From Ascoidea asiatica JCM 7603 (taxonomy: Eukaryota > Fungi > Ascomycota), in the NCBI GenBank assembly GCA_001600695.1, contig BCKQ01000040.1:1-33048 (forward strand): a stretch of 33,048 bases of DNA, read 5' to 3'. The number at the start of each line of letters is the position of its first letter. The stretch's first letter is position 1. The notes below the pieces were generated by a model. The model was given only the letters and a program-made list of their open reading frames with translations. It made no database searches and was not told where the DNA came from. Shown here in pieces: positions 1 to 33,048 of this stretch. A program made the translations under genes and the position numbers.

Positions 1-42
1 TTCAAATTCAAATTCAAATTCAAATTCAAATTCAAATTCAAA
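1..42 (+). repeat. (TTCAAA)7 coding microsatellite, Ser-Asn repeat in the LTE1 frame
   Basis: Read directly; a related tract lies at ~475-503. Confidence 0.9.
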
Positions 43-3000
43 CTTAAATTTTAAAAATTTAAATATCTTAGATACTAAATTTAATGAAAATATTTTAAAT
101 TCTTCAATAATTTTACCTGATAATTCAATAAATTCAATTAATTCAATTCAAAATAATAATTCTCCAATTATATCTCAAAATAATATAATTAATTCAAATA
201 TTATAGATCCTCATTCATATGATATTTCATTATCTTCTAATTCCAATTCAAATAATCATTCCAATTCACATTCTAATTCACATTCAAATTCACATTCAAA
301 TTCACATTCAAATAATAATTCTAATAATCATTCTAATAATCATTCATACACTTTTTCTTCAATTTCAAATCTGAATTCATATCCATATTCTGAACATTTT
401 GGTAGTAGTTTTAGAAGTAGTATGGATAAAATCTTTGAACAAAATTATTTAATTGATGAATCTTATATTTCTCATTCAAATTCAAATTCAAATTCAAATT
501 CAATTCCAACTGCTGAATTTAATTCTCAATCCATTATTAATTCAGATTCAACTTCAAGTAAATCTGAAAGACCTTCAATTTCAATTTCAAATTCAATTAA
601 TTATTATCCTTCAATTCCATCTATTAAATCTCCAAAACAAAATTCAATGCCTGCATTTTGGTTAAGTAATTCTTTAAATAATAATTTAAATAAACAAGCT
701 TTAAAAAAAAATAATTCAAATAATAATTCAAATAATAATGAATCTGAAAATAATTTAAATAATTTAAATAATTTAAAAATAAAATCAAGAAAAAATATTG
801 ATAATAATAAATTTGAATATCGTTTTCCAAGAAATAATGTTTCAACTTCAATTCCAACTCCTGATGATTTGATTTCCGTTGATTTAATATCTGAATCAAA
901 TGATTCTTTAATTTCAAAAGAAAATCCTTTGGAAACTTTAGATAAAATAATTTTTGAAAATAAAGAAAAATTTTTAAATTATCAAAAAAATAGACCTTCT
1001 CCTATAATAACAAATAATCATTCTAGAATTTCTTCATTACCTCATTCTCTTCCTCAATCACCATCTTTTATTCATTCTCCTTCATCAAGTCAAAATAATA
1101 CAATCCAAAGCTCAAAATTAAAATCATCTCATATGACTGATAATAATTTAATTTATTCAAATAATCATTTATTAAATAATGAATTATTGTCAAATGATTT
1201 TCAAAAGTCAAATCCTCTTTCACCATCTAAACTTTTGAATCCAAACGTTAATATTGGTCGCTTTATTAATGTTTTTGCAAATCCTACTACTCCCATGAAT
1301 ATAAACTCTTCTTTTCAACTGAAAGGTATTAAATATTTATCTTCACCACAAATTTCAAAAATAAATACTGAAAATTTAATACGAAGTAATACTGTAAAAC
1401 CAATAGAAAGGGAAGAAGAGAAAGTTTTACTTACTGATATTGTTCCACCTACTCCTAAAAGAAGATTAAATTTAAGCTTAGTAACTTTTGATGAAGATGA
1501 GTTAAGCATGATTGAAAAAAAAGATACTAATAATACTGTAATTGTGGAACCCAATCCTGAAGAAAAAATAAATGAAAAGAAAAAAAAATCAATGGAAAGT
1601 AACAATTATTCCAAAAACTCAAAAGTTATACCTTCTACTTCAAAGATTAAGATATCAAGTTCCACCATTGTTTCAAACTCTGCTATTTCTTATAGCAATT
1701 CAACTGAAGGAACCAGTATAAAATCAAACTCAAGAAATAAAAATGGTCTTTTTTTAAAAGCAGTTAAAAATAATTCTAAAATAACAAAAAATTCAATTAA
1801 ATCACCTCGAACTCCTTTATCACCACTAGTTGAAAAATCAAGAAATGTCAAAGTCTTATTCAATCAATGGAAACACAGCTTCGTCGGGAAAGAAAAAAAT
1901 GAAGTAAAGCAGGATGAAAATTTAAATAACTTAGTAGAAAATTTAATTAGTATCAATAGGGCAAGTACAAATGGATTACTTGCTAATGACTTACCAGTAA
2001 GTATTATTGAATCAGTGTTGAGTTTGGAAGAAAGTCAAAAATTTCAAAAAGAAATGATGCGTGCTTCTCAAAAATCTACTATAGACCGTATGGATCCTCC
2101 AACTGATATTAAAATAGACGTTTTATCTGCTAGAGTTATCGATGAGCTTGAATTTGTTATTAAACTTCGTCAAAAAATTGAAAATAAAACTGCTTTTCTT
2201 ACCCAAAAGTCAAATGGAAATACGTTGAATCATCTTGTTCCTATATCAAATGAACATGGTGTCAATCAATTGAACCCAGAGATTCCATTTTCGTCTAATC
2301 TTAATACTGTAAATGATAGAAGTACAATTATTGATAATGCTCACAATATAAGTATGTTAAACTCACAAATACCGGACAAGTTCAATATATCTCTTGGTAC
2401 TATTGGACACTCTCTAAAAAATAGTATCTCTGAAAATATTGATGATTTAGATGTGTTTAATTTCACTGGATCTCAACAAGAATTGTTAAATCTAGAAAAT
2501 AGTCAAGAAGAAAAATGTAAAGATATGCAAAATCAGAGCGCTATTAAATCAAATTTTTCAACTGAGGGTATTCAAGAGCCTAATCAAAAATACGTACATT
2601 TTAATAATAAAAATGATATGCTTGAAACACCTGATACTTGCAACCTCTTGAAAAAAAACTATCCAGGAAAAGGTCTTCAAAATAATTACGTACAATCGGA
2701 AAGTATACCTTTAAATAACGAAGAAGAAAGATTTACTGGAAATTTGAAAGAAATTGATAGATGCTCCAGGATAAGTTATATTTCGAATAAATCATACTCA
2801 AGTTATTCAGACTCTTCTGATAATGGCCTGCTTAAAGCTTTTGAGAGTGATTTGCAATCCGATGTATCTGAAGTACATGGATTGAAAAAAATGCCTGCCT
2901 TTAATGATTTTCATGGAGCTTTAGTTGATCCTGAAAAGGAAAATATGTTTACCAATTTCAACTATTCTACACTATCAACTAGCTCAGTATCATTGGGTGA

Positions 3001-5233
3001 AATCCCTTTACCTGCCCAAACTGGCAAAAAATTGGCCTATCATGAAGCAGAAGATCTTCAAATGAATTCCCTGATTAAAAATATAGGTTCTCATGACTTG
3101 AAATTTTCAATAAATTCATTAAATTTCACTAAACTGGACAGAGCAAAAAGTTATGAAGCTCATAACTTTAGTATTTGTTCCCCTCTAGATGATATACCTC
3201 ATTCAAAATTCCAGTCCCCTAATCAAAATTCAGTCTCGACTCAACAAAACTCTCAATTTTCAAATGATGGCCGATTTCAAGAGAGCTTTTCTTCTATTAC
3301 TTCTAAATCTTATATTTCTTATAACTCTGACCTTTCTATAAGCTCCTCTAAAACTGATATTATGATAAACTCCAAAGATCTTTTGAAAAAGCGTCGGGCC
3401 TTTCCAGATCTCAAGTTGGGGGTAGAAATTGATAAAGCTCCAGAATCTCCAATATATTTGCATAGAAGATCTAATACTCCAACAACAAGTAACAGTGATA
3501 CAATCAAAGGTGATAATTTTGAGAATAATAAAAATAATAGCCGATTTAAAAGTCCTTATTATTGTAGTGATGTAGCCGATAGAATTGATTCTAAAAGCTT
3601 CGATGAGAAAACAACAAGTTTAATATCTGAATCTTCTTCTATTTTTTCATCTGGAACAAAGCCTCTTTTAATTACTTTGAAACAAAATTTAACTGAAGAA
3701 GAAGAAAAAGAATTTAAGAATGATATTAATAAGTCTCGAGAGAATATTCTCAAAATGAAGAGATCCAAAGAAATGCTTGTTGCTCAAATGAGCCACAGAG
3801 ATCTGTCCTCGATAAAATCGTATCTAAGACATAAAAAGTCTTTTTCAGCAGATTCAATTAGTGTTTATGAGGTTGAAGGTTCGGAGACAAGAGTTCTTTC
3901 TTCAGTTAGTGATACTTTCTTACCGGCTTTTGTTGGTAATAATAGAGACATGGTTAGAAACTTGAAGGATATACCAGACGAAGATATAAGTGGTGATCCA
4001 GTAAGTGCTGCATTATGGAAATTAGAAGGAAAGCCTGAACCTAAGTTTAATAATATTGATACTTCTGATTCATTAAATTCAGAGGATGATCTCAAGAAGA
4101 AAAGTGTTGATTCTATACATGTTGATACTGATACTATTAGTAGAAATGTTGCAGAACTCAGTATTGCTGATTCTGCTGACATTCAAATGGATCCACCTAT
4201 TGGAGTGGGTCTGCTTGAAGGAAATATATTCGTCTCAATACCGAAGGTAGTTCAACAACTCAATAGTTTTGTTTGCACTTCCAAACTATGCAAAAATGTG
4301 AGCTCCAATTCTATTATTCAGGAAGAATTTTTAGATATTGAAAAGCAGTTAGAAGAGCATTTAATTACTGAGGGAGTTTTATCTATCAGCGAAGTTCTAG
4401 CAACTAAAAGACATATTTCATTTATTCTTAATTATGATTCATTTACATTGGCTAAGCAGTTTACTTTAATTGAAAGAGATACTTTATCTGAAGTGGATTG
4501 GAAGGAACTTATTGATATGGATTGGTCTCCAGAATTAAAACCAATCACCAGTTGGATTCAACTTTTAGTAAAAAAAGAAGTGAAAGGAATTGATCTTGTT
4601 ATATCTAGATTTAATTTAACAGTTAATTGGATTGTATCGGAAATTCTTCTAACAAGTGAGGAAATGTATCGAAAAGATACTATTGCAAGATTTATTCATA
4701 TTGCAAATCATTGCCATAAACTTCAAAACTATTCAACTCTTATGCAAATTATTCTTGCACTAACCACCCCAAGAATTAAACGATTATATTCTACTTGGAA
4801 TAAAATGGACGCTTCAGATATTTTTATGTTAAAAAATTTAGAAATATTTTTCAATTCAGAAGGAAACTTTTATAAATTAAGAAAAGATTTTGATCGTATA
4901 ATTCCTTCAAAGGGCTGTGTTCCTTTTTTTGGTTTATATCTTTCAGATTTAACATTTAATAGTAGTAAACCTATTTTAATATCCACTGCGTCAATTAACA
5001 AATTAAATTGTGCAAATGAAACTCCAAATTTAGACATCAATGATGATACCACATTAGTGAATATTGAGAGATTTTCTTCAGCATCTCAGATTGTACGTAA
5101 TTTCATTCAATGCATTCAATGGTCTAAGTTGTACGATATTGAATCTGTGCCTCAAGTATTATCAAAATGTTTGTATATAAAATCATTAACTGAAGAAGAA
5201 ATGGAATTATGCTTGAATAAAATTGCTGGATAA
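2..5233 (+). CDS. LTE1: Lte1-like RasGEF (CDC25 domain) mitotic-exit regulator, 5'-partial
   Basis: C-terminal RasGEF domain (HISFILNYDSFTLAKQFTLIERD...VDWKELI...RFNLTVNWIVSEI...GCVPFFGLYLSDL) plus a DPVSAALWKLEG block typical of Lte1. The frame is open from base 2 to the ATG at 422 (SNSNS...FGSSFRSS-M) and no N-terminal REM domain is seen, so the true start is probably outside the window. Confidence 0.85.
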   Translation, partial: SNSNSNSNSNSNSNLNFKNLNILDTKFNENILNSSIILPDNSINSINSIQNNNSPIISQNNIINSNIIDPHSYDISLSSNSNSNNHSNSHSNSHSNSHSNSHSNNNSNNHSNNHSYTFSSISNLNSYPYSEHFGSSFRSSMDKIFEQNYLIDESYISHSNSNSNSNSIPTAEFNSQSIINSDSTSSKSERPSISISNSINYYPSIPSIKSPKQNSMPAFWLSNSLNNNLNKQALKKNNSNNNSNNNESENNLNNLNNLKIKSRKNIDNNKFEYRFPRNNVSTSIPTPDDLISVDLISESNDSLISKENPLETLDKIIFENKEKFLNYQKNRPSPIITNNHSRISSLPHSLPQSPSFIHSPSSSQNNTIQSSKLKSSHMTDNNLIYSNNHLLNNELLSNDFQKSNPLSPSKLLNPNVNIGRFINVFANPTTPMNINSSFQLKGIKYLSSPQISKINTENLIRSNTVKPIEREEEKVLLTDIVPPTPKRRLNLSLVTFDEDELSMIEKKDTNNTVIVEPNPEEKINEKKKKSMESNNYSKNSKVIPSTSKIKISSSTIVSNSAISYSNSTEGTSIKSNSRNKNGLFLKAVKNNSKITKNSIKSPRTPLSPLVEKSRNVKVLFNQWKHSFVGKEKNEVKQDENLNNLVENLISINRASTNGLLANDLPVSIIESVLSLEESQKFQKEMMRASQKSTIDRMDPPTDIKIDVLSARVIDELEFVIKLRQKIENKTAFLTQKSNGNTLNHLVPISNEHGVNQLNPEIPFSSNLNTVNDRSTIIDNAHNISMLNSQIPDKFNISLGTIGHSLKNSISENIDDLDVFNFTGSQQELLNLENSQEEKCKDMQNQSAIKSNFSTEGIQEPNQKYVHFNNKNDMLETPDTCNLLKKNYPGKGLQNNYVQSESIPLNNEEERFTGNLKEIDRCSRISYISNKSYSSYSDSSDNGLLKAFESDLQSDVSEVHGLKKMPAFNDFHGALVDPEKENMFTNFNYSTLSTSSVSLGEIPLPAQTGKKLAYHEAEDLQMNSLIKNIGSHDLKFSINSLNFTKLDRAKSYEAHNFSICSPLDDIPHSKFQSPNQNSVSTQQNSQFSNDGRFQESFSSITSKSYISYNSDLSISSSKTDIMINSKDLLKKRRAFPDLKLGVEIDKAPESPIYLHRRSNTPTTSNSDTIKGDNFENNKNNSRFKSPYYCSDVADRIDSKSFDEKTTSLISESSSIFSSGTKPLLITLKQNLTEEEEKEFKNDINKSRENILKMKRSKEMLVAQMSHRDLSSIKSYLRHKKSFSADSISVYEVEGSETRVLSSVSDTFLPAFVGNNRDMVRNLKDIPDEDISGDPVSAALWKLEGKPEPKFNNIDTSDSLNSEDDLKKKSVDSIHVDTDTISRNVAELSIADSADIQMDPPIGVGLLEGNIFVSIPKVVQQLNSFVCTSKLCKNVSSNSIIQEEFLDIEKQLEEHLITEGVLSISEVLATKRHISFILNYDSFTLAKQFTLIERDTLSEVDWKELIDMDWSPELKPITSWIQLLVKKEVKGIDLVISRFNLTVNWIVSEILLTSEEMYRKDTIARFIHIANHCHKLQNYSTLMQIILALTTPRIKRLYSTWNKMDASDIFMLKNLEIFFNSEGNFYKLRKDFDRIIPSKGCVPFFGLYLSDLTFNSSKPILISTASINKLNCANETPNLDINDDTTLVNIERFSSASQIVRNFIQCIQWSKLYDIESVPQVLSKCLYIKSLTEEEMELCLNKIAG

Positions 5234-5617
5234 ATCAAAATGTGTTACTGTCATTCTTATTTAACTTAATACTTTTTTACTCTGTTTCAATATTGTCATT
5301 ATCATACACTTATTTTTTCTTGCATTTTTAGTTTTTCTTTTTTTTTTCGTTATTTTTTAGCTTTTTTTCTAGATTCTAGTTTACTTCTTTTGAATATTTT
5401 GTTTTTTTTTGTTAAATTCACCTTATCGTTGTGATTAATTCGATTTTAATTTTTAATTAGGTAGCATGTCTTTTTATTTATTTGTTTTTATTATTTATTT
5501 ATTTCTTTGTTATAAAATTTTATTTTTTTCAAACTTGATGAAGCTCTTTTGTTTACAAAAATTCGAACTAAATTCTAAATTATTTAATAAATGTGATATA
5601 TAATCAAATATTTTTTT

Positions 5618-6247
5618 CTATTTAATTATATTTCTGTTTCCACCGAAAACAACCTTTTCAGTATTTTGATTTGCACCACCCATATAACCGTATTCAATGG
5701 TACTCCATTGTGAAACATTCTTTTGAAGATGTGAAGGCTTTCTTGGAACTCGTGGAGCAGGTTTTCTGTCTTTTGAAGCTAGATTTGGTCCAATAACTTT
5801 AATAGCTGGGTTTATTTTATTAGCATATCGACTTAAACTAATTATTGCCGTATATACTTGAGAAGAATCTTGATTTTCAAATAAATCAACGGTAGAAAAT
5901 AACTCATCTTCTGGAACACCAATTTTCTTAGCATGAGCTAAAAATGTTGATATATTTTCCATTTTTATAAAAGGAAATTTTGGATTATGATTGAATTTTA
6001 TGTTTTTATTTTCTATTGCTTCTATCAATTTACAAAGAACAGTGCCATCATTTAAAATATCTAATAGATCCCCTTGATCTTTTAAATTAGATTCATTGAT
6101 ACAAGAAAATATCCAATTTTTGATTTCTGTAATTTTACCAATATCATATTTGGCATCTCTTTTTAGCTTTAAATCTTCATCAAGGGTAGTTACATCTGGT
6201 TTAACTCCATATACAGGACTATACGATAAAGTTTTATTTGGAAGCAT
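5618..6247 (-). CDS. SCP1: Calponin/transgelin homologue (actin-bundling)
   Basis: DVTTLDEDL N-terminus, CH domain (DGTVLCKL...PFIKMENISTFL...GVPEDELFSTVDLFE) and C-terminal calponin repeat (WSTIEYGYMGGANQ). Confidence 0.93.
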   Translation of the reverse strand: MLPNKTLSYSPVYGVKPDVTTLDEDLKLKRDAKYDIGKITEIKNWIFSCINESNLKDQGDLLDILNDGTVLCKLIEAIENKNIKFNHNPKFPFIKMENISTFLAHAKKIGVPEDELFSTVDLFENQDSSQVYTAIISLSRYANKINPAIKVIGPNLASKDRKPAPRVPRKPSHLQKNVSQWSTIEYGYMGGANQNTEKVVFGGNRNIIK

Positions 6248-6458
6248 GGTAAAAGTATTGTATTTTCAAAATCTAGTTGATTTAAGCAAATTAGTTGATT
6301 ATAATAATGGGTATAACTATTGAGTAATTCATGTTTATATCCAAGTGGTAAAACAATCTTTTTTGAATGAGATAGTTGCTTATTTTTATAGCTGGTTCTA
6401 AGCTGGCATTGGTGAAGCTGGTGCTTATATATTTTAAAGTTAACTTTACACACTTTAC

Positions 6459-6513
6459 CATGACTGATGACTAGAGTTTCCGTATTACCCTGCAATTTGA
6501 GGGCAGTTCGTTG
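6459..6513 (+). promoter_or_regulatory. Shared upstream element with TTACCCT-N8-AGGGCAG dyad (Reb1/Tbf1-like sites)
   Basis: 6485-6513 matches 24633-24661 at 25/29, preceded in both by catgRctgatgaMtagaR. Lies ~210-270 bp upstream of SCP1. Confidence 0.45.
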
Positions 6514-7016
6514 GGAAAAGAAACTGTATTTATCTTTTGATATTGGGAAAAAGGCAAAATGAGTTTTTCTTTCAACTTTTTATTTGATCATTGAAAATTC
6601 TTATATTATAGTTATGTTAAAATAAGGCATTAATTATTGAAGACTTGCAAAAGGAGTTCGATGTATTGAACCAGTTCATATTCAGATAACAACAAGTATT
6701 TTTTAAAAAGGAAAAGTAATACAATAAAAAGAGCGTTATTTCTATAATGAAATCAAAATACCTAATCAGAAAATAACAATATCAAATCCTCAAATTAGCA
6801 AACTCAGATTTTATGATAGTAAATTTTTAAATAAAACCTTAGGGGATAATTTATCTTTCTAAGCTTAAAAGGGAAACATAGACTATCCAATAAGTTGTTT
6901 ATTTTTCGATAAATCAGAAGAAAAACATAACAATAAACGTAAGAGTAAATATTCTATTTCTTTTCTTGAATTAAAATTATTCATTAGGAATTTATAATCA
7001 TAAAACATATTTAAAA

Positions 7017-8081
7017 ATGGGGTTGTTTGCAAGAGTTATGGAAGATTATAGAACTGATGTTTATCAACGTTGGGTTACTCATAATTGGAAAACAGAGCTT
7101 TATTTGGTTGGTACTTTATTAGTTTTTGTTGTTTGCCATATTATTGGATACAAATTAAATGAAAGTTATGTTAATAAAATTATTAAAGCAATTAAACCAT
7201 ATTTAGATGAAAATTTTTATAAATTTGGTTGTTCAGATACTGAATTATATATTAGAGATAATGATCAATTGTATACAACATATGCAAGTGGTAGAGTTAA
7301 TATTAAGAACATATTGATTAAAATTGTTTTAAAAGCAAGACAAAATTTTATTTTATATTTCTTTCAAGATGTTTTTTCATTTTTCATGCAAAGTTTAAAA
7401 GTTGAAGAGGATGTAATTGAAATTGTTGGAAATTTTAATGCTAATATCAAAGTTAATAATTTTATCTTTTCAATTGTTAATAAAGAAAATATGAAAGAAA
7501 ATAGAAATTCAAATTACTTTTTATCCTTAACAAAAACTCTTGATTCTTCAAATTTGCCAAATCAATTTGTTTTTATGTCCGAATCTTCTGAAATTAATGA
7601 TTTAATACTTGAAAAATCTGATATTAGTGATTTATTAAAGAATGTTGGAGATGTTTTACAATTTTTTGCAATTACAGATCAAGATTCCGTTCATCCAATA
7701 AATGTTGAAGATTGTACACCACTTCCTCGTTTTGTTATGAAACTAAATCTAAAAACTTCTAAAAAAGATTTATCACAAATTTTAGATTCTTTCAAATTAT
7801 TGTTTGCTATTATTGATTTTGTTTCAAATGATAAAAAATTTCAACCAAGACCAGAAGCTTTAAAAAAAATTAATAATGTTAGAAAACAAGAAGTTGATAA
7901 AATTATTAAAAGAATTGAACTTGAAAAAAAGGAATTATTAGAAGAAAAAAAAATTGAGGAACAGAAGAAAATTAGAGATGATATGAAAAGCAAAAGTCCT
8001 AGTGAACTAGAAAAATTAGAAAAAAAACAACAAGCAAAAAAAGAAAGAAGAATGAGAAATAAACAAAAATTTAGAATGTAA
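7017..8081 (+). CDS. CCDC47 / DUF1682 family ER membrane protein (YNR021W-like)
   Basis: N-terminal TM segment, YTTYASGR, RQN, NYFLSLTKT..S..LP..FVFMSES.E, TDQ motifs and a basic coiled-coil C-terminus. Confidence 0.85.
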   Translation: MGLFARVMEDYRTDVYQRWVTHNWKTELYLVGTLLVFVVCHIIGYKLNESYVNKIIKAIKPYLDENFYKFGCSDTELYIRDNDQLYTTYASGRVNIKNILIKIVLKARQNFILYFFQDVFSFFMQSLKVEEDVIEIVGNFNANIKVNNFIFSIVNKENMKENRNSNYFLSLTKTLDSSNLPNQFVFMSESSEINDLILEKSDISDLLKNVGDVLQFFAITDQDSVHPINVEDCTPLPRFVMKLNLKTSKKDLSQILDSFKLLFAIIDFVSNDKKFQPRPEALKKINNVRKQEVDKIIKRIELEKKELLEEKKIEEQKKIRDDMKSKSPSELEKLEKKQQAKKERRMRNKQKFRM

Positions 8082-8309
8082 ATCTACTATATAAAAATGT
8101 TAATATTTCTTTTTTTTCTTAATCAACTTTATATCTAACATATTTTGAGTGGTATGTTCAAAACGACCACCCATTTACCGGAAATGACTGGCTCGTAATG
8201 TTTGTTGAAACACCGAGGTCTGTTCTAAAAGAAATTTATATTTGAATACTCAAACAATTAGAAAAACTTTCTTAATAAACTAAATAAATAAGAATATATA
8301 AAAAAGAAA

Positions 8310-9939
8310 TACTAACAGATTTGTGCTAGTTTATTATAAGACTCTTCAATATTAAATTCCTCAGACTGCTGGTCCAAGTCATTTGACTGTGGCGGTAAAG
8401 GCGAAGGATTCTAGAGAGACCAGCACTTGTAAAAGTAGATAGAACAACAATTGGAGAAGGAATGATATTAATTTTCTTTTTATCATCAGAAAAAGATTGA
8501 TTAAGAATTCCAAAAACAAATCCTGGAGTATTTGGCTTGACGTTAAAGTGAGAAAAAGGTTTATCTAAATCATCATCCAAAGAATTATTACTTTTTGTAA
8601 AGAGACTTTAATCCTCAGTTGGAGAAACAATCACAGTAGAAGTTCACATTTTAGAAGGACCCATATCAGAAGAACTTGTTGCAGCAGAGATAGTTTTAGA
8701 TTATTGTAACTATTTTTTTCATTGATCATGTTATCATTTTTAATGCTATTATCAGTATTAAAAAATTTTATATTAAATTATATGAATAGTTATTATGAAA
8801 TAAAGGATGATAATCTTGATGAATTTTATAATAATTTATTTCAAGAAGAACTTTATTCACCAATAATTTTAAATAATAAATTAAAAGAATTGTTCAAAGA
8901 TTATATTTTTTTAATAAATAATTTTAAATAATGTTTTTATTACTACTAATGCTATATATATACATATTATTACAATTATTATTATTAGAGATTGAATTTT
9001 TGTTATCTGAATTCCTAAAACAGGGAACATTGATCTCAGTTTCATCTAGATTCATTGTAGTATAATTAACAAATGGCTCTAATTCTGAGCCATTATTAGA
9101 CAAATCATTTCTGTAATTAATTATGTTATGATTACCACTAGCTAGAGTAGAATGTTTACCTACGCTAAAAGCAAGAGAATACTCAATCGAAACTTGAAAA
9201 GTGGTATCAAATAAAGAGGATTAATTTAAGCTATTCTGTTGTCTTAATATTGAAGGCAAGAAATATTTGTTTGATAAGGAATTATAGTAATTATAATTGC
9301 TATTATTATCATTAAGTTGTTCAGAAATTGGGGATTGTGATTTACTATAGGCTTGAGAAGATGAAGGATTATCTTTCTTAGAATCTATATTTGAAAAATT
9401 AGTTTAAGAATTTGGAAATGAATAAGCTGATAAGTTGTGATTGAAACCTTTTTTTCAAGATTTTTAATAAATTTATTATCACATGAAAAATTTGAAATAT
9501 AATTTGAAGAAGATCTGTTAGCAGAATTTAAATATGACAATGAATTAGAAAACAAATTATTTAAACCTTTAAATTTCATTCCTATAGGTTGATGTCTTAC
9601 CGTATGTTAACCAATGTGAAAATTTGACAAGGTAAATTGACAATGTAGATGGAGATTTTTCCAAATTAAATACATTTCAGTATGGGAGTTAAGTAAATAA
9701 TTTTTACCTAAATCATCAATTTCAGTAACAGCTTTAGTTTTTTCATATACCTGATTATCATCTTTTGGAATTGAACCCAATTCTTTGCCCAGCTTTAATA
9801 TCCAACCATCTGAATTATTACCGTCATCATCTGAGGAGTTTCACGAAGCAGTAATATCTGCTAAATTCCAAACAAAATTATTATATTTCATAAATTTTTT
9901 AATATGGTCGATTTCATCATCATAAATTTCGGGGAACAT
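8310..9939 (-). pseudogene. Decayed coding relic(s) of an unidentified Ser/Asn-rich protein
   Basis: Minus-strand coding-like stretches broken by stops and frameshifts: ATG 9939 MFPEIYDDEIDHIKKF...AS*NSSDDDG...; ...IG*HTVRHQPIG into ORF 9385-9579; SSLFDTTFQVSIEYS...; ...MGPSKM*TSTVIVSPTED*SLF into ORF 8326-8580. No family recognised. Confidence 0.4.
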
Positions 9940-13275: not shown

Positions 13276-13293
13276 ATATATATATATATATAT
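13276..13293. repeat. (AT)n microsatellite
   Basis: atatatatatatatatat read directly. Confidence 0.7.
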
Positions 13294-13456
13294 TGCTCAT
13301 TACGGTTCTAGAGTTAAACAATTTTGAATGTTTAGGATTGTGTTAGTTTTTAAGAAGAATAATAGTTGCAAAATATCATTACCTTATTTTTAATCTAACG
13401 TGCGAGCATTCATTCTGCTATCACCATGGTCCAGCTAAAGTCATTTTATACGGTTC

Positions 13457-22753: not shown

Positions 22754-23245
22754 ATGAGTGAAAAAATGGAGATAGATGGTATGTTTTTCAAAAGAGTTTA
22801 TAATATCAAATAAAAAGGGTTTATTTTTTGTTCACAAAAGTAATGTATTTACTAACAATTTCAATTTTTATTTTCTTCGTGATTGTTTTTAATAGCGTTA
22901 CCACCATCACAGCCTGAACAACAGAAACAGGAGAATCAATCAATAAATACTAATAATTTAGTTAAAAAAGAGAAGAAAAAGTTTGAAGTTCGTAAATGGA
23001 CAGCTGTTGCATTTTGGTCTTGGGATATACAAGTTGAAACCTGTGCAATTTGCAGAAATCATTTAATGGAAAGATGCATTGAATGTCAACCTAATAGTAT
23101 GAGCAGTACTTCTGATAATTGTATCGCTGCTTGGGGAACTTGTAATCATGCATTTCATCTTCATTGCATATCAAGATGGTTAAAAACAAGACCTGTATGT
23201 CCTTTAGATAATAAAGAATGGGTTCTTCAAAAATATGGTAAATAA
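22754..23245 (+). CDS. HRT1: RING-H2 subunit of SCF/cullin ligases (Rbx1/Roc1); join(22754..22778,22896..23245), 124 aa
   Basis: [25 protein letters not shown]...[27 protein letters not shown]. Exon 1 (MSEKMEID) splices in frame to exon 2. Confidence 0.95.
22779..22895 (+). other. Spliceosomal intron of HRT1 (117 nt)
   Basis: GTATGT at 22779, TACTAAC at 22850-22856, TAG at 22893-22895; phase 1, restores the frame. Confidence 0.92.
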
Positions 23246-23374
23246 TCTACTTTATTTATAACCTTAATTGTTGTATAAAATATATTATAAGTAATAAATT
23301 ATAAATTATAGACTATATTTTCTATATTCTATATTAAATTTTAGCAATTTCATAATAAGTACTTACTTTTAAAC

Positions 23375-24430
23375 TCATTTAAAACTTACCTCGTTATCAT
23401 AATATTTTTTGTTTCTTTCAAAGGTTCCAATAATCTCAAATTTGATACAATTTTTTGTAAATTCTTCATATATTTTTGTATTCTTATCAATTTTGCCAAA
23501 AACTTCAAAAAAAAATACATATTGCCATTTTTTGAAATTTGAAGGTCTTGAAGAAATTGTTGATAAATTTAACTCAAATTTGTTAAAACAATTCATTATA
23601 TTGAATAAGGATCCTTGTCGTTTATTATCTATCACGAATGCCAATAATGTAATATAATCTTCTTTAATATCTTTTGGAGAACTGTGTTTCATATTCTGAT
23701 TCTCATTATTGAGATGTATTTTTGGATCATTACCATAAGTTCCCATAATCAAAAACCTTGTTGTATTATTATTATCATCTTCTATACATTTCCTTAAAAT
23801 TGGTACATTATATATTTGACTTGAAATTCTTGATCCAATAGAACCAGAACCTTTAATTTTTTTACTAAATTCATCAACTATTATACTCGTTGCTTTAGAT
23901 GTTGAAGACGTATCTATTTTTTCAAACTTTTTATTTCCAGGTAAAGTTTCATTAAAAAATCTATTACATTGAGTCCAAACTTGAGGATGGCTATATATTC
24001 TATCAATATTTTCAATTTGTTTTTCAAAACTCATTAAATAATGATGAATTGAGACGAATTCTTCTCCAATTACTTTAATTTTACTCTCAAATTCTGTAGT
24101 TAAATAGGTTCGTTTTATGTTCTCATTTTTTAAAGTTAAAATATTTTTATCATTTTTGAGTTGATCTTTGATGAAAAAGTCTCTTATTAAATCATATGTC
24201 ATAACAACACTCCCATTAGTTGAATTTTCTATTGGAATAACAGAATAATTAACATCATTTGTAAAAATTCTTGTGAAGCACTCTTTAATTGAAAATTGTG
24301 GTAAATATTCTACTTCATTTTCCAATTCAAATTTTTTAAAATATGAAAGAGCAGCCTCATGAGAAAATGTTCCTTTGGGTCCAAGATAACAAACTTTTAT
24401 CACTTTTCTACTTCCAATATCATCAACCAT
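23375..24430 (-). CDS. PHA2: Prephenate dehydratase
   Basis: YLGPKGTFSHEAA, PIENSTNGSV, YSHPQVWTQC, NTTRF catalytic motif and ACT domain (NLSTISSRP...WQYVFFFE). Confidence 0.95.
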   Translation of the reverse strand: MVDDIGSRKVIKVCYLGPKGTFSHEAALSYFKKFELENEVEYLPQFSIKECFTRIFTNDVNYSVIPIENSTNGSVVMTYDLIRDFFIKDQLKNDKNILTLKNENIKRTYLTTEFESKIKVIGEEFVSIHHYLMSFEKQIENIDRIYSHPQVWTQCNRFFNETLPGNKKFEKIDTSSTSKATSIIVDEFSKKIKGSGSIGSRISSQIYNVPILRKCIEDDNNNTTRFLIMGTYGNDPKIHLNNENQNMKHSSPKDIKEDYITLLAFVIDNKRQGSLFNIMNCFNKFELNLSTISSRPSNFKKWQYVFFFEVFGKIDKNTKIYEEFTKNCIKFEIIGTFERNKKYYDNEVSFK

Positions 24431-24523
24431 AAAGATAAAGACTTTTGAATAAAAAAGGTTCTAAAGTGAAAATTATTTCAGCAAATTCAGTACACTTATA
24501 AAGTTAGAAAGTACAGTTTTTTT

Positions 24524-24602
24524 ATTGCAAAACCAGACTCCAGAAATCGTTGTATGACAAACCATGTGACACACATAGTTAGAGCCAAACTCCAGACATT
24601 GA
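24524..24602 (+). repeat. Dispersed direct repeat, copy 2 (partner 15357-15437), in the PHA2 upstream region
   Basis: attgcaaaaccagactccagaaatcgttgtatgacaaaccatgtga matches 15357-15402 with 2 mismatches. Confidence 0.9.
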
Positions 24603-24605
24603 TAA

Positions 24606-24661
24606 CATGGCTGATGAATAGAATCGGAAATGTTACCCTTCAAATTTAGGGCAGTTTGTTG
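24606..24661 (+). promoter_or_regulatory. Diverged copy of the SCP1-upstream dyad element
   Basis: ttacccttcaaatttagggcagtttgttg matches 6485-6513 at 25/29 and has the same orientation relative to its gene (PHA2). Confidence 0.45.
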
Positions 24662-24967
24662 TTTAAAGTAAGCGCATGACATTTTGTTAGTACGACCCTT
24701 GTAAAACTAAAATAAATAAAAGACTGAGCAAAAAAATTTAAAAAATTTAGAGATTATTTCTCCAGAGAATCCACAAAAATCAATTACGTAATTCCGGGTA
24801 CCGGACATTTTAATTGTGTTTTTTGGGTCCGGAATGAGGCAGAAAAAACCCAGAATACATTGAGAACATAAAATATGATTCAGAAAAATGTTTATTGTTG
24901 GTAAGAAATTTTAGATATAAAGTTGATTAAGAAAAAAAAGAAATATTAACATTTTTATATAGTAGAT

Positions 24968-26032
24968 TTACATTCTAAATTTTTGTTTATTTCTCATTCT
25001 TCTTTCTTTTTTTGCTTGTTGTTTTTTTTCTAATTTTTCTAGTTCACCAGGACTTTTGCTTTTCATATCATCTCTAATTTTCTTCTGTTCCTCAATTTTT
25101 TTTTCTTCTAATAATTCCTTTTTTTCAAGTTCAATTCTTTTAATAATTTTATCAACTTCTTGTTTTCTAACATTATTAATTTTTTTTAAAGCTTCTGATC
25201 TTGGTTGAAATTTTTTATCATTTGAAACAAAATCAATAATAGCAAACAATAATTTGAAAGAATCTAAAATTTGTGATAAATCTTTTTTAGAAGTTTTTAG
25301 ATTTAGTTTCATAACAAAACGAGGAAGTGGTGTACAATCTTCAACATTTATTGGATGAACGGAATCTTGATCTGTAATTGCAAAAAATTGTAAAACATCT
25401 CCAACATTCTTTAATAAATCACTAATATCAGATTTTTCAAGTATTAAATCATTAATTTCAGAAGATTCGGACATAAAAACAAATTGATTTGGCAAATTTG
25501 AAGAATCAAGAGTTTTTGTTAAGGATAAAAAGTAATTTGAATTTCTATTTTCTTTCATATTTTCTTTATTAACAATTGAAAAGATAAAATTATTAACTTT
25601 GATATTAGCATTAAAATTTCCAACAATTTCAATTACATCCTCTTCAACTTTTAAACTTTGCATGAAAAATGAAAAAACATCTTGAAAGAAATATAAAATA
25701 AAATTTTGTCTTGCTTTTAAAACAATTTTAATCAATATGTTCTTAATATTAACTCTACCACTTGCATATGTTGTATACAATTGATCATTATCTCTAATAT
25801 ATAATTCAGTATCTGAACAACCAAATTTATAAAAATTTTCATCTAAATATGGTTTAATTGCTTTAATAATTTTATTAACATAACTTTCATTTAATTTGTA
25901 TCCAATAATATGGCAAACAACAAAAACTAATAAAGTACCAACCAAATAAAGCTCTGTTTTCCAATTATGAGTAACCCAACGTTGATAAACATCAGTTCTA
26001 TAATCTTCCATAACTCTTGCAAACAACCCCAT
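24968..26032 (-). CDS. CCDC47 / DUF1682 family protein (YNR021W-like), second copy
   Basis: Mirror of 7017-8081; RSEAL vs RPEAL and SPGEL vs SPSEL. Confidence 0.85.
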   Translation of the reverse strand: MGLFARVMEDYRTDVYQRWVTHNWKTELYLVGTLLVFVVCHIIGYKLNESYVNKIIKAIKPYLDENFYKFGCSDTELYIRDNDQLYTTYASGRVNIKNILIKIVLKARQNFILYFFQDVFSFFMQSLKVEEDVIEIVGNFNANIKVNNFIFSIVNKENMKENRNSNYFLSLTKTLDSSNLPNQFVFMSESSEINDLILEKSDISDLLKNVGDVLQFFAITDQDSVHPINVEDCTPLPRFVMKLNLKTSKKDLSQILDSFKLLFAIIDFVSNDKKFQPRSEALKKINNVRKQEVDKIIKRIELEKKELLEEKKIEEQKKIRDDMKSKSPGELEKLEKKQQAKKERRMRNKQKFRM

Positions 26033-26535
26033 TTTTAAATATGTTTTATGATTATAAATTCCTAATGAATAATTTTAATTCAAGAAAAGAAATAGAATAT
26101 TTACTCTTACGTTTATTGTTATGTTTTTCTTCTGATTTATCGAAAAATAAACAACTTATTGGATAGTCTATGTTTCCCTTTTAAGCTTAGAAAGATAAAT
26201 TATCCCCTAAGGTTTTATTTAAAAATTTACTATCATAAAATCTGAGTTTGCTAATTTGAGGATTTGATATTGTTATTTTCTGATTAGGTATTTTGATTTC
26301 ATTATAGAAATAACGCTCTTTTTATTGTATTACTTTTCCTTTTTAAAAAATACTTGTTGTTATCTGAATATGAACTGGTTCAATACATCGAACTCCTTTT
26401 GCAAGTCTTCAATAATTAATGCCTTATTTTAACATAACTATAATATAAGAATTTTCAATGATCAAATAAAAAGTTGAAAGAAAAACTCATTTTGCCTTTT
26501 TCCCAATATCAAAAGATAAATACAGTTTCTTTTCC

Positions 26536-26590
26536 CAACGAACTGCCCTCAAATTGCAGGGTAATACGGAAACTCTAGTCATCAGTCATG
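26536..26590 (-). promoter_or_regulatory. Mirror copy of the 6459-6513 element
   Basis: Part of the right arm of the inverted repeat. Confidence 0.45.
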
Positions 26591-26801
26591 GTAAAGTGTG
26601 TAAAGTTAACTTTAAAATATATAAGCACCAGCTTCACCAATGCCAGCTTAGAACCAGCTATAAAAATAAGCAACTATCTCATTCAAAAAAGATTGTTTTA
26701 CCACTTGGATATAAACATGAATTACTCAATAGTTATACCCATTATTATAATCAACTAATTTGCTTAAATCAACTAGATTTTGAAAATACAATACTTTTAC
26801 C

Positions 26802-27431
26802 ATGCTTCCAAATAAAACTTTATCGTATAGTCCTGTATATGGAGTTAAACCAGATGTAACTACCCTTGATGAAGATTTAAAGCTAAAAAGAGATGCCAAA
26901 TATGATATTGGTAAAATTACAGAAATCAAAAATTGGATATTTTCTTGTATCAATGAATCTAATTTAAAAGATCAAGGGGATCTATTAGATATTTTAAATG
27001 ATGGCACTGTTCTTTGTAAATTGATAGAAGCAATAGAAAATAAAAACATAAAATTCAATCATAATCCAAAATTTCCTTTTATAAAAATGGAAAATATATC
27101 AACATTTTTAGCTCATGCTAAGAAAATTGGTGTTCCAGAAGATGAGTTATTTTCTACCGTTGATTTATTTGAAAATCAAGATTCTTCTCAAGTATATACG
27201 GCAATAATTAGTTTAAGTCGATATGCTAATAAAATAAACCCAGCTATTAAAGTTATTGGACCAAATCTAGCTTCAAAAGACAGAAAACCTGCTCCACGAG
27301 TTCCAAGAAAGCCTTCACATCTTCAAAAGAATGTTTCACAATGGAGTACCATTGAATACGGTTATATGGGTGGTGCAAATCAAAATACTGAAAAGGTTGT
27401 TTTCGGTGGAAACAGAAATATAATTAAATAG
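26802..27431 (+). CDS. SCP1: Calponin/transgelin homologue, second copy
   Basis: Translation identical to 5618-6247. Confidence 0.93.
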   Translation: MLPNKTLSYSPVYGVKPDVTTLDEDLKLKRDAKYDIGKITEIKNWIFSCINESNLKDQGDLLDILNDGTVLCKLIEAIENKNIKFNHNPKFPFIKMENISTFLAHAKKIGVPEDELFSTVDLFENQDSSQVYTAIISLSRYANKINPAIKVIGPNLASKDRKPAPRVPRKPSHLQKNVSQWSTIEYGYMGGANQNTEKVVFGGNRNIIK

Positions 27432-27815
27432 AAAAAAATATTTGATTATATATCACATTTATTAAATAATTTAGAATTTAGTTCGAATTTTTGTAAACAA
27501 AAGAGCTTCATCAAGTTTGAAAAAAATAAAATTTTATAACAAAGAAATAAATAAATAATAAAAACAAATAAATAAAAAGACATGCTACCTAATTAAAAAT
27601 TAAAATCGAATTAATCACAACGATAAGGTGAATTTAACAAAAAAAAACAAAATATTCAAAAGAAGTAAACTAGAATCTAGAAAAAAAGCTAAAAAATAAC
27701 GAAAAAAAAAAGAAAAACTAAAAATGCAAGAAAAAATAAGTGTATGATAATGACAATATTGAAACAGAGTAAAAAAGTATTAAGTTAAATAAGAATGACA
27801 GTAACACATTTTGAT

Positions 27816-30800
27816 TTATCCAGCAATTTTATTCAAGCATAATTCCATTTCTTCTTCAGTTAATGATTTTATATACAAACATTTTGATAATACTTGAGGC
27901 ACAGATTCAATATCGTACAACTTAGACCATTGAATGCATTGAATGAAATTACGTACAATCTGAGATGCTGAAGAAAATCTCTCAATATTCACTAATGTGG
28001 TATCATCATTGATGTCTAAATTTGGAGTTTCATTTGCACAATTTAATTTGTTAATTGACGCAGTGGATATTAAAATAGGTTTACTACTATTAAATGTTAA
28101 ATCTGAAAGATATAAACCAAAAAAAGGAACACAGCCCTTTGAAGGAATTATACGATCAAAATCTTTTCTTAATTTATAAAAGTTTCCTTCTGAATTGAAA
28201 AATATTTCTAAATTTTTTAACATAAAAATATCTGAAGCGTCCATTTTATTCCAAGTAGAATATAATCGTTTAATTCTTGGGGTGGTTAGTGCAAGAATAA
28301 TTTGCATAAGAGTTGAATAGTTTTGAAGTTTATGGCAATGATTTGCAATATGAATAAATCTTGCAATAGTATCTTTTCGATACATTTCCTCACTTGTTAG
28401 AAGAATTTCCGATACAATCCAATTAACTGTTAAATTAAATCTAGATATAACAAGATCAATTCCTTTCACTTCTTTTTTTACTAAAAGTTGAATCCAACTG
28501 GTGATTGGTTTTAATTCTGGAGACCAATCCATATCAATAAGTTCCTTCCAATCCACTTCAGATAAAGTATCTCTTTCAATTAAAGTAAACTGCTTAGCCA
28601 ATGTAAATGAATCATAATTAAGAATAAATGAAATATGTCTTTTAGTTGCTAGAACTTCGCTGATAGATAAAACTCCCTCAGTAATTAAATGCTCTTCTAA
28701 CTGCTTTTCAATATCTAAAAATTCTTCCTGAATAATAGAATTGGAGCTCACATTTTTGCATAGTTTGGAAGTGCAAACAAAACTATTGAGTTGTTGAACT
28801 ACCTTCGGTATTGAGACGAATATATTTCCTTCAAGCAGACCCACTCCAATAGGTGGATCCATTTGAATGTCAGCAGAATCAGCAATACTGAGTTCTGCAA
28901 CATTTCTACTAATAGTATCAGTATCAACATGTATAGAATCAACACTTTTCTTCTTGAGATCATCCTCTGAATTTAATGAATCAGAAGTATCAATATTATT
29001 AAACTTAGGTTCAGGCTTTCCTTCTAATTTCCATAATGCAGCACTTACTGGATCACCACTTATATCTTCGTCTGGTATATCCTTCAAGTTTCTAACCATG
29101 TCTCTATTATTACCAACAAAAGCCGGTAAGAAAGTATCACTAACTGAAGAAAGAACTCTTGTCTCCGAACCTTCAACCTCATAAACACTAATTGAATCTG
29201 CTGAAAAAGACTTTTTATGTCTTAGATACGATTTTATCGAGGACAGATCTCTGTGGCTCATTTGAGCAACAAGCATTTCTTTGGATCTCTTCATTTTGAG
29301 AATATTCTCTCGAGACTTATTAATATCATTCTTAAATTCTTTTTCTTCTTCTTCAGTTAAATTTTGTTTCAAAGTAATTAAAAGAGGCTTTGTTCCAGAT
29401 GAAAAAATAGAAGAAGATTCAGATATTAAACTTGTTGTTTTCTCATCGAAGCTTTTAGAATCAATTCTATCGGCTACATCACTACAATAATAAGGACTTT
29501 TAAATCGGCTATTATTTTTATTATTCTCAAAATTATCACCTTTGATTGTATCACTGTTACTTGTTGTTGGAGTATTAGATCTTCTATGCAAATATATTGG
29601 AGATTCTGGAGCTTTATCAATTTCTACCCCCAACTTGAGATCTGGAAAGGCCCGACGCTTTTTCAAAAGATCTTTGGAGTTTATCATAATATCAGTTTTA
29701 GAGGAGCTTATAGAAAGGTCAGAGTTATAAGAAATATAAGATTTAGAAGTAATAGAAGAAAAGCTCTCTTGAAATCGGCCATCATTTGAAAATTGAGAGT
29801 TTTGTTGAGTCGAGACTGAATTTTGATTAGGGGACTGGAATTTTGAATGAGGTATATCATCTAGAGGGGAACAAATACTAAAGTTATGAGCTTCATAACT
29901 TTTTGCTCTGTCCAGTTTAGTGAAATTTAATGAATTTATTGAAAATTTCAAGTCATGAGAACCTATATTTTTAATCAGGGAATTCATTTGAAGATCTTCT
30001 GCTTCATGATAGGCCAATTTTTTGCCAGTTTGGGCAGGTAAAGGGATTTCACCCAATGATACTGAGCTAGTTGATAGTGTAGAATAGTTGAAATTGGTAA
30101 ACATATTTTCCTTTTCAGGATCAACTAAAGCTCCATGAAAATCATTAAAGGCAGGCATTTTTTTCAATCCATGTACTTCAGATACATCGGATTGCAAATC
30201 ACTCTCAAAAGCTTTAAGCAGGCCATTATCAGAAGAGTCTGAATAACTTGAGTATGATTTATTCGAAATATAACTTATCCTGGAGCATCTATCAATTTCT
30301 TTCAAATTTCCAGTAAATCTTTCTTCTTCGTTATTTAAAGGTATACTTTCCGATTGTACGTAATTATTTTGAAGACCTTTTCCTGGATAGTTTTTTTTCA
30401 AGAGGTTGCAAGTATCAGGTGTTTCAAGCATATCATTTTTATTATTAAAATGTACGTATTTTTGATTAGGCTCTTGAATACCCTCAGTTGAAAAATTTGA
30501 TTTAATAGCGCTCTGATTTTGCATATCTTTACATTTTTCTTCTTGACTATTTTCTAGATTTAACAATTCTTGTTGAGATCCAGTGAAATTAAACACATCT
30601 AAATCATCAATATTTTCAGAGATACTATTTTTTAGAGAGTGTCCAATAGTACCAAGAGATATATTGAACTTGTCCGGTATTTGTGAGTTTAACATACTTA
30701 TATTGTGAGCATTATCAATAATTGTACTTCTATCATTTACAGTATTAAGATTAGACGAAAATGGAATCTCTGGGTTCAATTGATTGACACCATGTTCATT

Positions 30801-33047
30801 TGATATAGGAACAAGATGATTCAACGTATTTCCATTTGACTTTTGGGTAAGAAAAGCAGTTTTATTTTCAATTTTTTGACGAAGTTTAATAACAAATTCA
30901 AGCTCATCGATAACTCTAGCAGATAAAACGTCTATTTTAATATCAGTTGGAGGATCCATACGGTCTATAGTAGATTTTTGAGAAGCACGCATCATTTCTT
31001 TTTGAAATTTTTGACTTTCTTCCAAACTCAACACTGATTCAATAATACTTACTGGTAAGTCATTAGCAAGTAATCCATTTGTACTTGCCCTATTGATACT
31101 AATTAAATTTTCTACTAAGTTATTTAAATTTTCATCCTGCTTTACTTCATTTTTTTCTTTCCCGACGAAGCTGTGTTTCCATTGATTGAATAAGACTTTG
31201 ACATTTCTTGATTTTTCAACTAGTGGTGATAAAGGAGTTCGAGGTGATTTAATTGAATTTTTTGTTATTTTAGAATTATTTTTAACTGCTTTTAAAAAAA
31301 GACCATTTTTATTTCTTGAGTTTGATTTTATACTGGTTCCTTCAGTTGAATTGCTATAAGAAATAGCAGAGTTTGAAACAATGGTGGAACTTGATATCTT
31401 AATCTTTGAAGTAGAAGGTATAACTTTTGAGTTTTTGGAATAATTGTTACTTTCCATTGATTTTTTTTTCTTTTCATTTATTTTTTCTTCAGGATTGGGT
31501 TCCACAATTACAGTATTATTAGTATCTTTTTTTTCAATCATGCTTAACTCATCTTCATCAAAAGTTACTAAGCTTAAATTTAATCTTCTTTTAGGAGTAG
31601 GTGGAACAATATCAGTAAGTAAAACTTTCTCTTCTTCCCTTTCTATTGGTTTTACAGTATTACTTCGTATTAAATTTTCAGTATTTATTTTTGAAATTTG
31701 TGGTGAAGATAAATATTTAATACCTTTCAGTTGAAAAGAAGAGTTTATATTCATGGGAGTAGTAGGATTTGCAAAAACATTAATAAAGCGACCAATATTA
31801 ACGTTTGGATTCAAAAGTTTAGATGGTGAAAGAGGATTTGACTTTTGAAAATCATTTGACAATAATTCATTATTTAATAAATGATTATTTGAATAAATTA
31901 AATTATTATCAGTCATATGAGATGATTTTAATTTTGAGCTTTGGATTGTATTATTTTGACTTGATGAAGGAGAATGAATAAAAGATGGTGATTGAGGAAG
32001 AGAATGAGGTAATGAAGAAATTCTAGAATGATTATTTGTTATTATAGGAGAAGGTCTATTTTTTTGATAATTTAAAAATTTTTCTTTATTTTCAAAAATT
32101 ATTTTATCTAAAGTTTCCAAAGGATTTTCTTTTGAAATTAAAGAATCATTTGATTCAGATATTAAATCAACGGAAATCAAATCATCAGGAGTTGGAATTG
32201 AAGTTGAAACATTATTTCTTGGAAAACGATATTCAAATTTATTATTATCAATATTTTTTCTTGATTTTATTTTTAAATTATTTAAATTATTTAAATTATT
32301 TTCAGATTCATTATTATTTGAATTATTATTTGAATTATTTTTTTTTAAAGCTTGTTTATTTAAATTATTATTTAAAGAATTACTTAACCAAAATGCAGGC
32401 ATTGAATTTTGTTTTGGAGATTTAATAGATGGAATTGAAGGATAATAATTAATTGAATTTGAAATTGAAATTGAAGGTCTTTCAGATTTACTTGAAGTTG
32501 AATCTGAATTAATAATGGATTGAGAATTAAATTCAGCAGTTGGAATTGAATTTGAATTTGAATTTGAATTTGAATGAGAAATATAAGATTCATCAATTAA
32601 ATAATTTTGTTCAAAGATTTTATCCATACTACTTCTAAAACTACTACCAAAATGTTCAGAATATGGATATGAATTCAGATTTGAAATTGAAGAAAAAGTG
32701 TATGAATGATTATTAGAATGATTATTAGAATTATTATTTGAATGTGAATTTGAATGTGAATTTGAATGTGAATTAGAATGTGAATTGGAATGATTATTTG
32801 AATTGGAATTAGAAGATAATGAAATATCATATGAATGAGGATCTATAATATTTGAATTAATTATATTATTTTGAGATATAATTGGAGAATTATTATTTTG
32901 AATTGAATTAATTGAATTTATTGAATTATCAGGTAAAATTATTGAAGAATTTAAAATATTTTCATTAAATTTAGTATCTAAGATATTTAAATTTTTAAAA
33001 TTTAAGTTTGAATTTGAATTTGAATTTGAATTTGAATTTGAATTTGA
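27816..33047 (-). CDS. LTE1: Lte1-like RasGEF, second copy, 5'-partial
   Basis: Translation identical to the left copy; frame open to the window end. Confidence 0.85.
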   Translation of the reverse strand, partial: SNSNSNSNSNSNSNLNFKNLNILDTKFNENILNSSIILPDNSINSINSIQNNNSPIISQNNIINSNIIDPHSYDISLSSNSNSNNHSNSHSNSHSNSHSNSHSNNNSNNHSNNHSYTFSSISNLNSYPYSEHFGSSFRSSMDKIFEQNYLIDESYISHSNSNSNSNSIPTAEFNSQSIINSDSTSSKSERPSISISNSINYYPSIPSIKSPKQNSMPAFWLSNSLNNNLNKQALKKNNSNNNSNNNESENNLNNLNNLKIKSRKNIDNNKFEYRFPRNNVSTSIPTPDDLISVDLISESNDSLISKENPLETLDKIIFENKEKFLNYQKNRPSPIITNNHSRISSLPHSLPQSPSFIHSPSSSQNNTIQSSKLKSSHMTDNNLIYSNNHLLNNELLSNDFQKSNPLSPSKLLNPNVNIGRFINVFANPTTPMNINSSFQLKGIKYLSSPQISKINTENLIRSNTVKPIEREEEKVLLTDIVPPTPKRRLNLSLVTFDEDELSMIEKKDTNNTVIVEPNPEEKINEKKKKSMESNNYSKNSKVIPSTSKIKISSSTIVSNSAISYSNSTEGTSIKSNSRNKNGLFLKAVKNNSKITKNSIKSPRTPLSPLVEKSRNVKVLFNQWKHSFVGKEKNEVKQDENLNNLVENLISINRASTNGLLANDLPVSIIESVLSLEESQKFQKEMMRASQKSTIDRMDPPTDIKIDVLSARVIDELEFVIKLRQKIENKTAFLTQKSNGNTLNHLVPISNEHGVNQLNPEIPFSSNLNTVNDRSTIIDNAHNISMLNSQIPDKFNISLGTIGHSLKNSISENIDDLDVFNFTGSQQELLNLENSQEEKCKDMQNQSAIKSNFSTEGIQEPNQKYVHFNNKNDMLETPDTCNLLKKNYPGKGLQNNYVQSESIPLNNEEERFTGNLKEIDRCSRISYISNKSYSSYSDSSDNGLLKAFESDLQSDVSEVHGLKKMPAFNDFHGALVDPEKENMFTNFNYSTLSTSSVSLGEIPLPAQTGKKLAYHEAEDLQMNSLIKNIGSHDLKFSINSLNFTKLDRAKSYEAHNFSICSPLDDIPHSKFQSPNQNSVSTQQNSQFSNDGRFQESFSSITSKSYISYNSDLSISSSKTDIMINSKDLLKKRRAFPDLKLGVEIDKAPESPIYLHRRSNTPTTSNSDTIKGDNFENNKNNSRFKSPYYCSDVADRIDSKSFDEKTTSLISESSSIFSSGTKPLLITLKQNLTEEEEKEFKNDINKSRENILKMKRSKEMLVAQMSHRDLSSIKSYLRHKKSFSADSISVYEVEGSETRVLSSVSDTFLPAFVGNNRDMVRNLKDIPDEDISGDPVSAALWKLEGKPEPKFNNIDTSDSLNSEDDLKKKSVDSIHVDTDTISRNVAELSIADSADIQMDPPIGVGLLEGNIFVSIPKVVQQLNSFVCTSKLCKNVSSNSIIQEEFLDIEKQLEEHLITEGVLSISEVLATKRHISFILNYDSFTLAKQFTLIERDTLSEVDWKELIDMDWSPELKPITSWIQLLVKKEVKGIDLVISRFNLTVNWIVSEILLTSEEMYRKDTIARFIHIANHCHKLQNYSTLMQIILALTTPRIKRLYSTWNKMDASDIFMLKNLEIFFNSEGNFYKLRKDFDRIIPSKGCVPFFGLYLSDLTFNSSKPILISTASINKLNCANETPNLDINDDTTLVNIERFSSASQIVRNFIQCIQWSKLYDIESVPQVLSKCLYIKSLTEEEMELCLNKIAG

Positions 33048-33048
33048 A
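33007..33048 (-). repeat. (TTTGAA)7 microsatellite, mirror of 1-42
   Basis: Read directly. Confidence 0.9.

Follow-up and report, generated by a model that had tools for sequence, protein, structure and literature searches.

The window analysed here, a stretch of 33,048 bp from the yeast Ascoidea asiatica, is the complete contig C40 of an assembly of 71 records and 20.3 Mb, that of strain NRRL Y-17576/JCM 7603 (BCKQ01000001-71, 71 records; PMC6041473). Two reverse-complement arms, at 1-8146 and 24903-33048, a match well beyond what chance would give, lie symmetrically about a central segment and reach both contig ends, and as written each arm carries an LTE1-like gene, an SCP1-like gene, and a gene of the CCDC47/DUF1682 family (Table 1). 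The left 7 kb of the 16.8-kb spacer between the repeated sequences is a mosaic of old fragments, and the right 9 kb holds four genes, DBP10, PIK1, HRT1, and PHA2. Scans of the window for tRNA genes and Rfam families gave no matches. The window is free of ambiguous bases, and neither it nor the adjoining ends of contigs C12 and C24 contains the isolated single N bases that are scattered in large numbers in small contigs (at the ends of C30-C48) and in repeat copies; those single N bases may be heterozygous or paralogous sites flattened by the assembler. Exact-protein look-ups with the CCDC47-like protein, PHA2, and SCP1, which sought independent assemblies, found no record.

Table 1. Features of the window and the read contigs aligned to it. 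The depths given are k-mer means for individual Logan contigs; they are not read counts, and a per-contig depth is not a copy number.
Feature	Position	Strand	Remarks
LTE1/SCP1 flank	1..6957	+	Single-copy; read-contig depth equals that of the spacer
LTE1-like RasGEF protein	422-5233; frame open 2-5233	+	Pfam RasGEF
SCP1-like CH-domain protein	5618-6247	-	Pfam CH
Repeat copy R	6958..8138 (1181 nt)	+	Read contig of 1181-1192 nt at ~2x depth
CCDC47/DUF1682-family gene in R	7017-8081	+	Pfam PF07946, E 4.9e-85
Bracketed segment (spacer)	8139..24910	.	Both junctions with R present in reads
Truncated dispersed-element fragment	8140..8753	+	~80% identical; starts exactly at the edge of arm homology
Two adjacent ORFs	10613-11593 and 11735-12802	+	Stop near 11594 between them; single-copy in assembly
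Aldehyde-dehydrogenase relic	13619-13894		
DBP10 (DEAD-box helicase, DBP10CT domain)	15655..18603	+	Pfam
PIK1 (PI 4-kinase)	18823..22101	-	Pfam
HRT1/RBX1 RING-H2 protein	22883..23245	+	Pfam
PHA2 (prephenate dehydratase)	23375..24430	-	Pfam
Repeat copy R'	24911..26091	-	Second CCDC47-like gene, 24968-26032
Second writing of LTE1/SCP1 flank	26092..33048	-	Artefact; flank depth 1x
LTE1/SCP1 flank read contig	~750-6987 (6238 nt in X1/X2)		Depth X1 44.3, X2 52.2, X3 36.8
Repeat read contig	6958-8138 (1181-1192 nt)		Depth X1 92.5, X2 100.1, X3 61.4
Spacer read contig			Depth X1 44.9, X2 52.6, X3 39.2

The fragment that opens the left side of the spacer belongs to a dispersed element of about 2.4 kb with terminal inverted repeats of 40-65 bp and no ORF above 134 aa (for example, C2:203790-207435). 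At least 10 loci match the window fragment at 78-85%, and the five loci compared are 92-95% identical to one another; from these sequence features, the element looks like a non-autonomous DNA transposon family. Further pieces of the left side are 70-81% identical to loci elsewhere in the genome. Neither of the two adjacent ORFs in this mosaic has a Pfam match at E<0.01. By language-model features, the second (11735-12802) falls with atypical fungal kinases (0.96), and the first (10613-11593) sits with unnamed proteins of ascomycetes and has one weak match to a SPOK2_N cluster (0.87). On the strength of such model features, a Spok-like identity for the pair is only a lead.

Three of the genes on the right side of the spacer, DBP10, PIK1, and HRT1, are essential in Saccharomyces cerevisiae, and the closest relative of the fourth product is PHA2 of Ascoidea rubescens (48% identity). 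The block of four is bracketed by direct repeats of about 75 bp (15357-15431 and 24524-24596, 87% identical), the left one of which belongs to a dispersed repeat (window 15108-15400) with many genomic copies. In A. rubescens (KV454481.1), DBP10 adjoins PHA2-HRT1, and LTE1, SCP1, and HMG1 are not nearby. The placement of PIK1 between DBP10 and PHA2-HRT1 in A. asiatica, together with the inverted orientation of the PHA2-HRT1 pair, points to small local rearrangements within the spacer since the two species split. Only the PHA2-HRT1 adjacency is kept in Saccharomycopsis, and synteny with A. rubescens and Saccharomycopsis yielded no pairing of the outer flanks with the spacer ends.

Base-by-base comparison of the arms raises doubts about their origin. 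Positions 1-7850 are matched exactly, the only mismatches lie at 7851 (C/T) and 8001 (A/G), and homology stops at 8138/8139. This inner edge has 2 differences in 288 bp; the same rate would give about 55 over the outer 7850 bp, where there are none, and the arms are therefore unlike two independent copies. Inverted ends were absent from all 20 of the other small contigs checked (C30-C50), which rules out a general assembler habit as the cause and makes the hairpin shape specific to the C40 locus, as expected of a short inverted repeat that is really there.

The first-pass annotation had proposed that, were the duplication real, the arms should stand at twice the depth of the spacer. Contigs built at k=31 from three public read sets, X1 and X3 from one 2016 sample (S1) and X2 from a 2023 sample (S2), were aligned on window positions 4501-10500; X1 and X3 are probably the source data of the assembly, and X2 possibly represents the same strain as kept by a different collection. 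The read contigs of all three runs share two breaks, 6958-6987 and 8109-8138, and overlap at each by 30 nt, as expected of graph branch points. In every run, mean k-mer depth per contig, which is a property of the contig and not a copy number, was about the same for the flank as for the spacer and about twice as high for the repeat (Table 1), so that only 6958-8138, not the whole arm, stands at the proposed ratio. The branch topology agrees independently with this 1:2:1 pattern. Position 7851 reads C in X1 and T in X3, which come from the same sample, and both versions of the repeat are thus present in it. One read contig runs from 8109 into 8503, on the transposon-relic side, and a loose read-contig end at 8138 matches, in reverse complement, the sequence from 24910 downwards, the PHA2-side junction, placing both spacer-R junctions in the reads.

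These data divide each arm into two parts of different standing. The inverted-repeat pair that brackets the region is real at 1.18 kb, as attested by its roughly doubled depth and by the presence of both inner junctions in reads, but not at 8.1 kb. The near-identical inverted arms described in the first-pass annotation (1-8138 and 24911-33048) accordingly hold as a description of the contig but, by read depth, not of the genome beyond 6958-8138; of the three genes said to be duplicated, the CCDC47-like gene is (about 2x depth), whereas LTE1 and SCP1 have the depth of the spacer. Positions 26092-33048 are an artefactual repeat writing of a single-copy flank, and this flank makes up 6,957 bp, or about 85%, of each arm.

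The outer ends of the contig tell the same story. Both ends of C40 sit in one (TTCAAA)n tract, which is encoded as (SN)n within the LTE1 frame, and the only 5' part of LTE1 in the assembly is an open frame with a RasGEF_N domain that runs off the end of C24 (157,758 bp). C24 terminates in the same (TTCAAA)n tract in the same frame as the start of C40, and the LTE1 frame is open across both. As the two LTE1 copies on C40 are cut at the same base, they need the same single continuation, C24. LTE1 is thereby split between C24:157019-157758 and window positions 1-45, at the microsatellite, and the joined gene would encode about 2,050 residues.

On the other outer side, the 583-kb contig C12 supplies what C40 lacks. 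It begins at arm coordinate 7850, one base short of the first arm difference, and its first 858 bases (C12:1-858) are identical, in reverse complement, to window 7850-6993. Behind 6992, C12 carries an 11-nt insertion (TTCAGTTTAGA), also found in the X1 repeat contig, after which homology resumes to 6958 and then stops. Beyond that point lies unrelated sequence with HMG1 and then TMA16, both identified with Pfam. On one of the two sides, the true outer neighbour of one repeat copy is therefore C12, the HMG1 side.

Taken together, the evidence makes it very likely that C40 is the product of an assembler walk across a short, real inverted repeat and that the 8.1-kb arms are mostly artefact. The genome would contain inverted copies of a 1.18-kb unit, R and R', bracketing 16.8 kb, one copy joined outward to SCP1-LTE1-C24 and the other to HMG1-TMA16-C12. 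Faced with an identical core of 858 bp (6993-7850), a short-read assembler would be unable to assign the outer flanks; it would exit the repeat on either side into the LTE1/SCP1 flank and halt at the LTE1 microsatellite, with C12 left dangling where R and R' first differ (7851). From the junctions and depths, we infer this behaviour of the assembler and the linear join of C24, C40, and C12. The most likely layout is C24-LTE1-SCP1-R-16.8 kb-R'-HMG1-TMA16-rest of C12, which uses each unique piece once and R twice; the join between the unique part of C12 and the spacer, which no read or contig spans physically, follows from parsimony.

Many features of C40 are those of a hairpin misassembly at an inverted repeat: the form is flank-repeat-loop-repeat'-flank', with arms identical by construction that reach the contig ends, the depth of the flank is single-copy, and the true second flank lies on a contig that ends in the repeat. 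What sets C40 apart is that a real inverted duplication lies underneath, lengthened by the artefact from 1.18 to 8.1 kb. The first-pass annotation had offered, as its alternative, an assembly path from the left flank through the spacer into the inverted left flank, caused by a heterozygous inversion. The path itself is borne out, with a single-copy flank written twice and C12 left dangling, but the inversion is needless as its cause, because a 1.18-kb repeat with an 858-bp identical core suffices to mislead a short-read assembler.

The duplicated unit itself consists of the CCDC47-like gene plus 59 bp of 5' and 57 bp of 3' flanking sequence. R and R' are about 99.8% identical, and their encoded proteins differ by P279S and S329G (R' relative to R). 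All three differences between the copies lie at the edges of the unit (chance of about 0.02 under a uniform spread, calculated post hoc), an arrangement of the sequence that would fit gene conversion from one copy to the other. CCDC47 matches number just three in the assembly: two lie on C40, and the third, truncated, opens C12. The closest relative of the protein is from A. rubescens (59% identity), which has a single CCDC47 gene between MSB1 and CYC1, and Saccharomycopsis crataegensis has its CCDC47 gene among yet other neighbours. With one gene, in other neighbourhoods, in both A. rubescens and Saccharomycopsis, the duplicate is lineage-specific. The left copy on the contig (C at 7851, A at 8001), which adjoins the mosaic of captured fragments, may be the derived one. 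Although the unit extends little beyond the gene and lies against a transposon fragment, we do not claim retroposition as its origin: there is no poly(A) at 8138, and the adjoining element is of the terminal-inverted-repeat type without a long ORF rather than an LTR element.

A pair of inverted repeats around a block of genes invites comparison with the flip/flop systems that switch mating type in yeasts. Such systems are described in Ogataea polymorpha, Komagataella phaffii, Pachysolen tannophilus, and A. rubescens, where inverted repeats of about 1-2 kb bracket regions of 8-138 kb (in A. rubescens, 2-kb repeats around 44 kb) (PMC6692504). The C40 repeat is of similar size, and its spacer is within the same range. 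Unlike those systems, C40 lacks MAT genes both within the region and next to it, has no known telomere or centromere beside the repeats, and has as its repeat a whole gene of housekeeping type. The first-pass annotation had seen no HMG, alpha-box, or homeodomain gene in the window, and this observation stands, with no match to MATalpha_HMGbox, HMG_box, or Homeodomain on C40 in either six-frame genome scans or Pfam searches of ORFs. MATa and MATalpha genes are thus not found at opposite ends of this region. The MAT alleles of A. asiatica are elsewhere: Krassowski et al. (2019) described the species as a heterothallic diploid with MAT alleles containing STE20 and the ArfGAP gene AGE1 (PMC6692504). 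The only MATalpha1 match (MATalpha_HMGbox) in the assembly is at C50:5906-6133, on a contig of 11.8 kb, as would fit a diploid in which one MAT allele had been assembled on its own. No paper on the "Saccharomyces chromosome XIV flip/flop region", to which the locus had also been likened, turned up in the literature collection searched.

Another analogue is the outer repeat pair of K. phaffii, whose enclosed region differs in orientation among natural isolates (PMC6692504). That neutral inversion polymorphism and the C40 locus have in common a high-identity inverted gene pair as candidate substrate and the absence of a broken gene; the K. phaffii polymorphism has been seen among isolates, whereas the C40 pair is known from one assembled orientation. 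It is plausible that R and R' could recombine and so invert the 16.8 kb. Every gene would stay intact, and only the sequence downstream of each CCDC47-like copy would be exchanged. We expect any inversion to be phenotypically silent, producing no switch-like phenotype, as neither copy has a known silencing context beside it, there is no MAT-type gene, and the flanking genes are ordinary (SCP1/LTE1 and HMG1/TMA16; in the joined contigs, no contig end comes closer to the region than about 160 kb).

A possible extension of the misassembly explanation, though one that we regard as rather unlikely, is that the 16.8 kb lies in both orientations in the diploid culture, through a heterozygous inversion or ongoing flipping mediated by R and R'. 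Conflicting long-range links would then explain why the flanks went unplaced. An assembly with contigs of several hundred kilobases to megabases failed at a 1.18-kb repeat, and did so only here among the 21 small contigs checked; the high identity of the copies, their edge-only differences, and the 858-bp core would fit ongoing gene conversion; and the strain is reported to be diploid, with the sister species A. rubescens inverting its own repeat-bracketed region (PMC6692504). On the other hand, no polymorphism is needed for a repeat of this kind to defeat a short-read assembler, and C40 also breaks at a mere microsatellite, a sign of limited repeat resolution. Contigs at k=31 are unable to phase an identical core of 858 bp.

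Diploidy also admits a structural heterozygote, in which one homologue alone carries the LTE1-R-spacer-R'-HMG1 block, or in which the homologues are palindromic, one with LTE1 on both sides and one with HMG1 on both sides. The description of the strain as diploid (PMC6692504) and the placement of the MATalpha allele on its own small contig, C50, are in keeping with such an arrangement, and the 1:2:1 depth ratios, taken alone and among the contigs of this locus, would permit it. Nevertheless, we consider it very improbable. Palindromic homologues would be dicentric or acentric and thus unstable, while hemizygosity of the block would leave one homologue without LTE1, DBP10, PIK1, and HRT1 and calls for a further deletion junction, of which there was no sign. 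The lack of ambiguous bases in the window, and of any diverged allele of it in the assembly, weighs against both forms. A true inverted repeat of at least 8.1 kb, which would duplicate LTE1, SCP1, and the CCDC47-like gene and leave a third partial repeat copy at C12, has the contig sequence itself in its favour but is extremely improbable, as it needs the flank at twice and the repeat at three times the depth of the spacer where about 1x and 2x were seen in three runs, requires two LTE1 5' ends where the assembly has one at the end of a 158-kb contig, and sets 7850 bp of exact identity beside 2 differences in 288 bp, unlike independent copies.

Under the misassembly explanation, C40 of the public A. 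asiatica assembly should not be used as evidence for a duplicated LTE1 or SCP1 or for an 8-kb palindrome-like region, and C24, C40, and C12 probably form a single stretch of chromosome, about 765 kb long, and could be merged. After this correction there remains a single-gene inverted duplication, ordinary and lineage-specific, which would matter only if the 16.8 kb exists in both orientations. If it does, A. asiatica would have an invertible region unconnected with MAT in a genus where a MAT flip/flop arose. The invertible block would hold DBP10, PIK1, HRT1, PHA2, and a possible Spok-like kinase ORF, and such an arrangement might lock a driver-like gene to essential genes.
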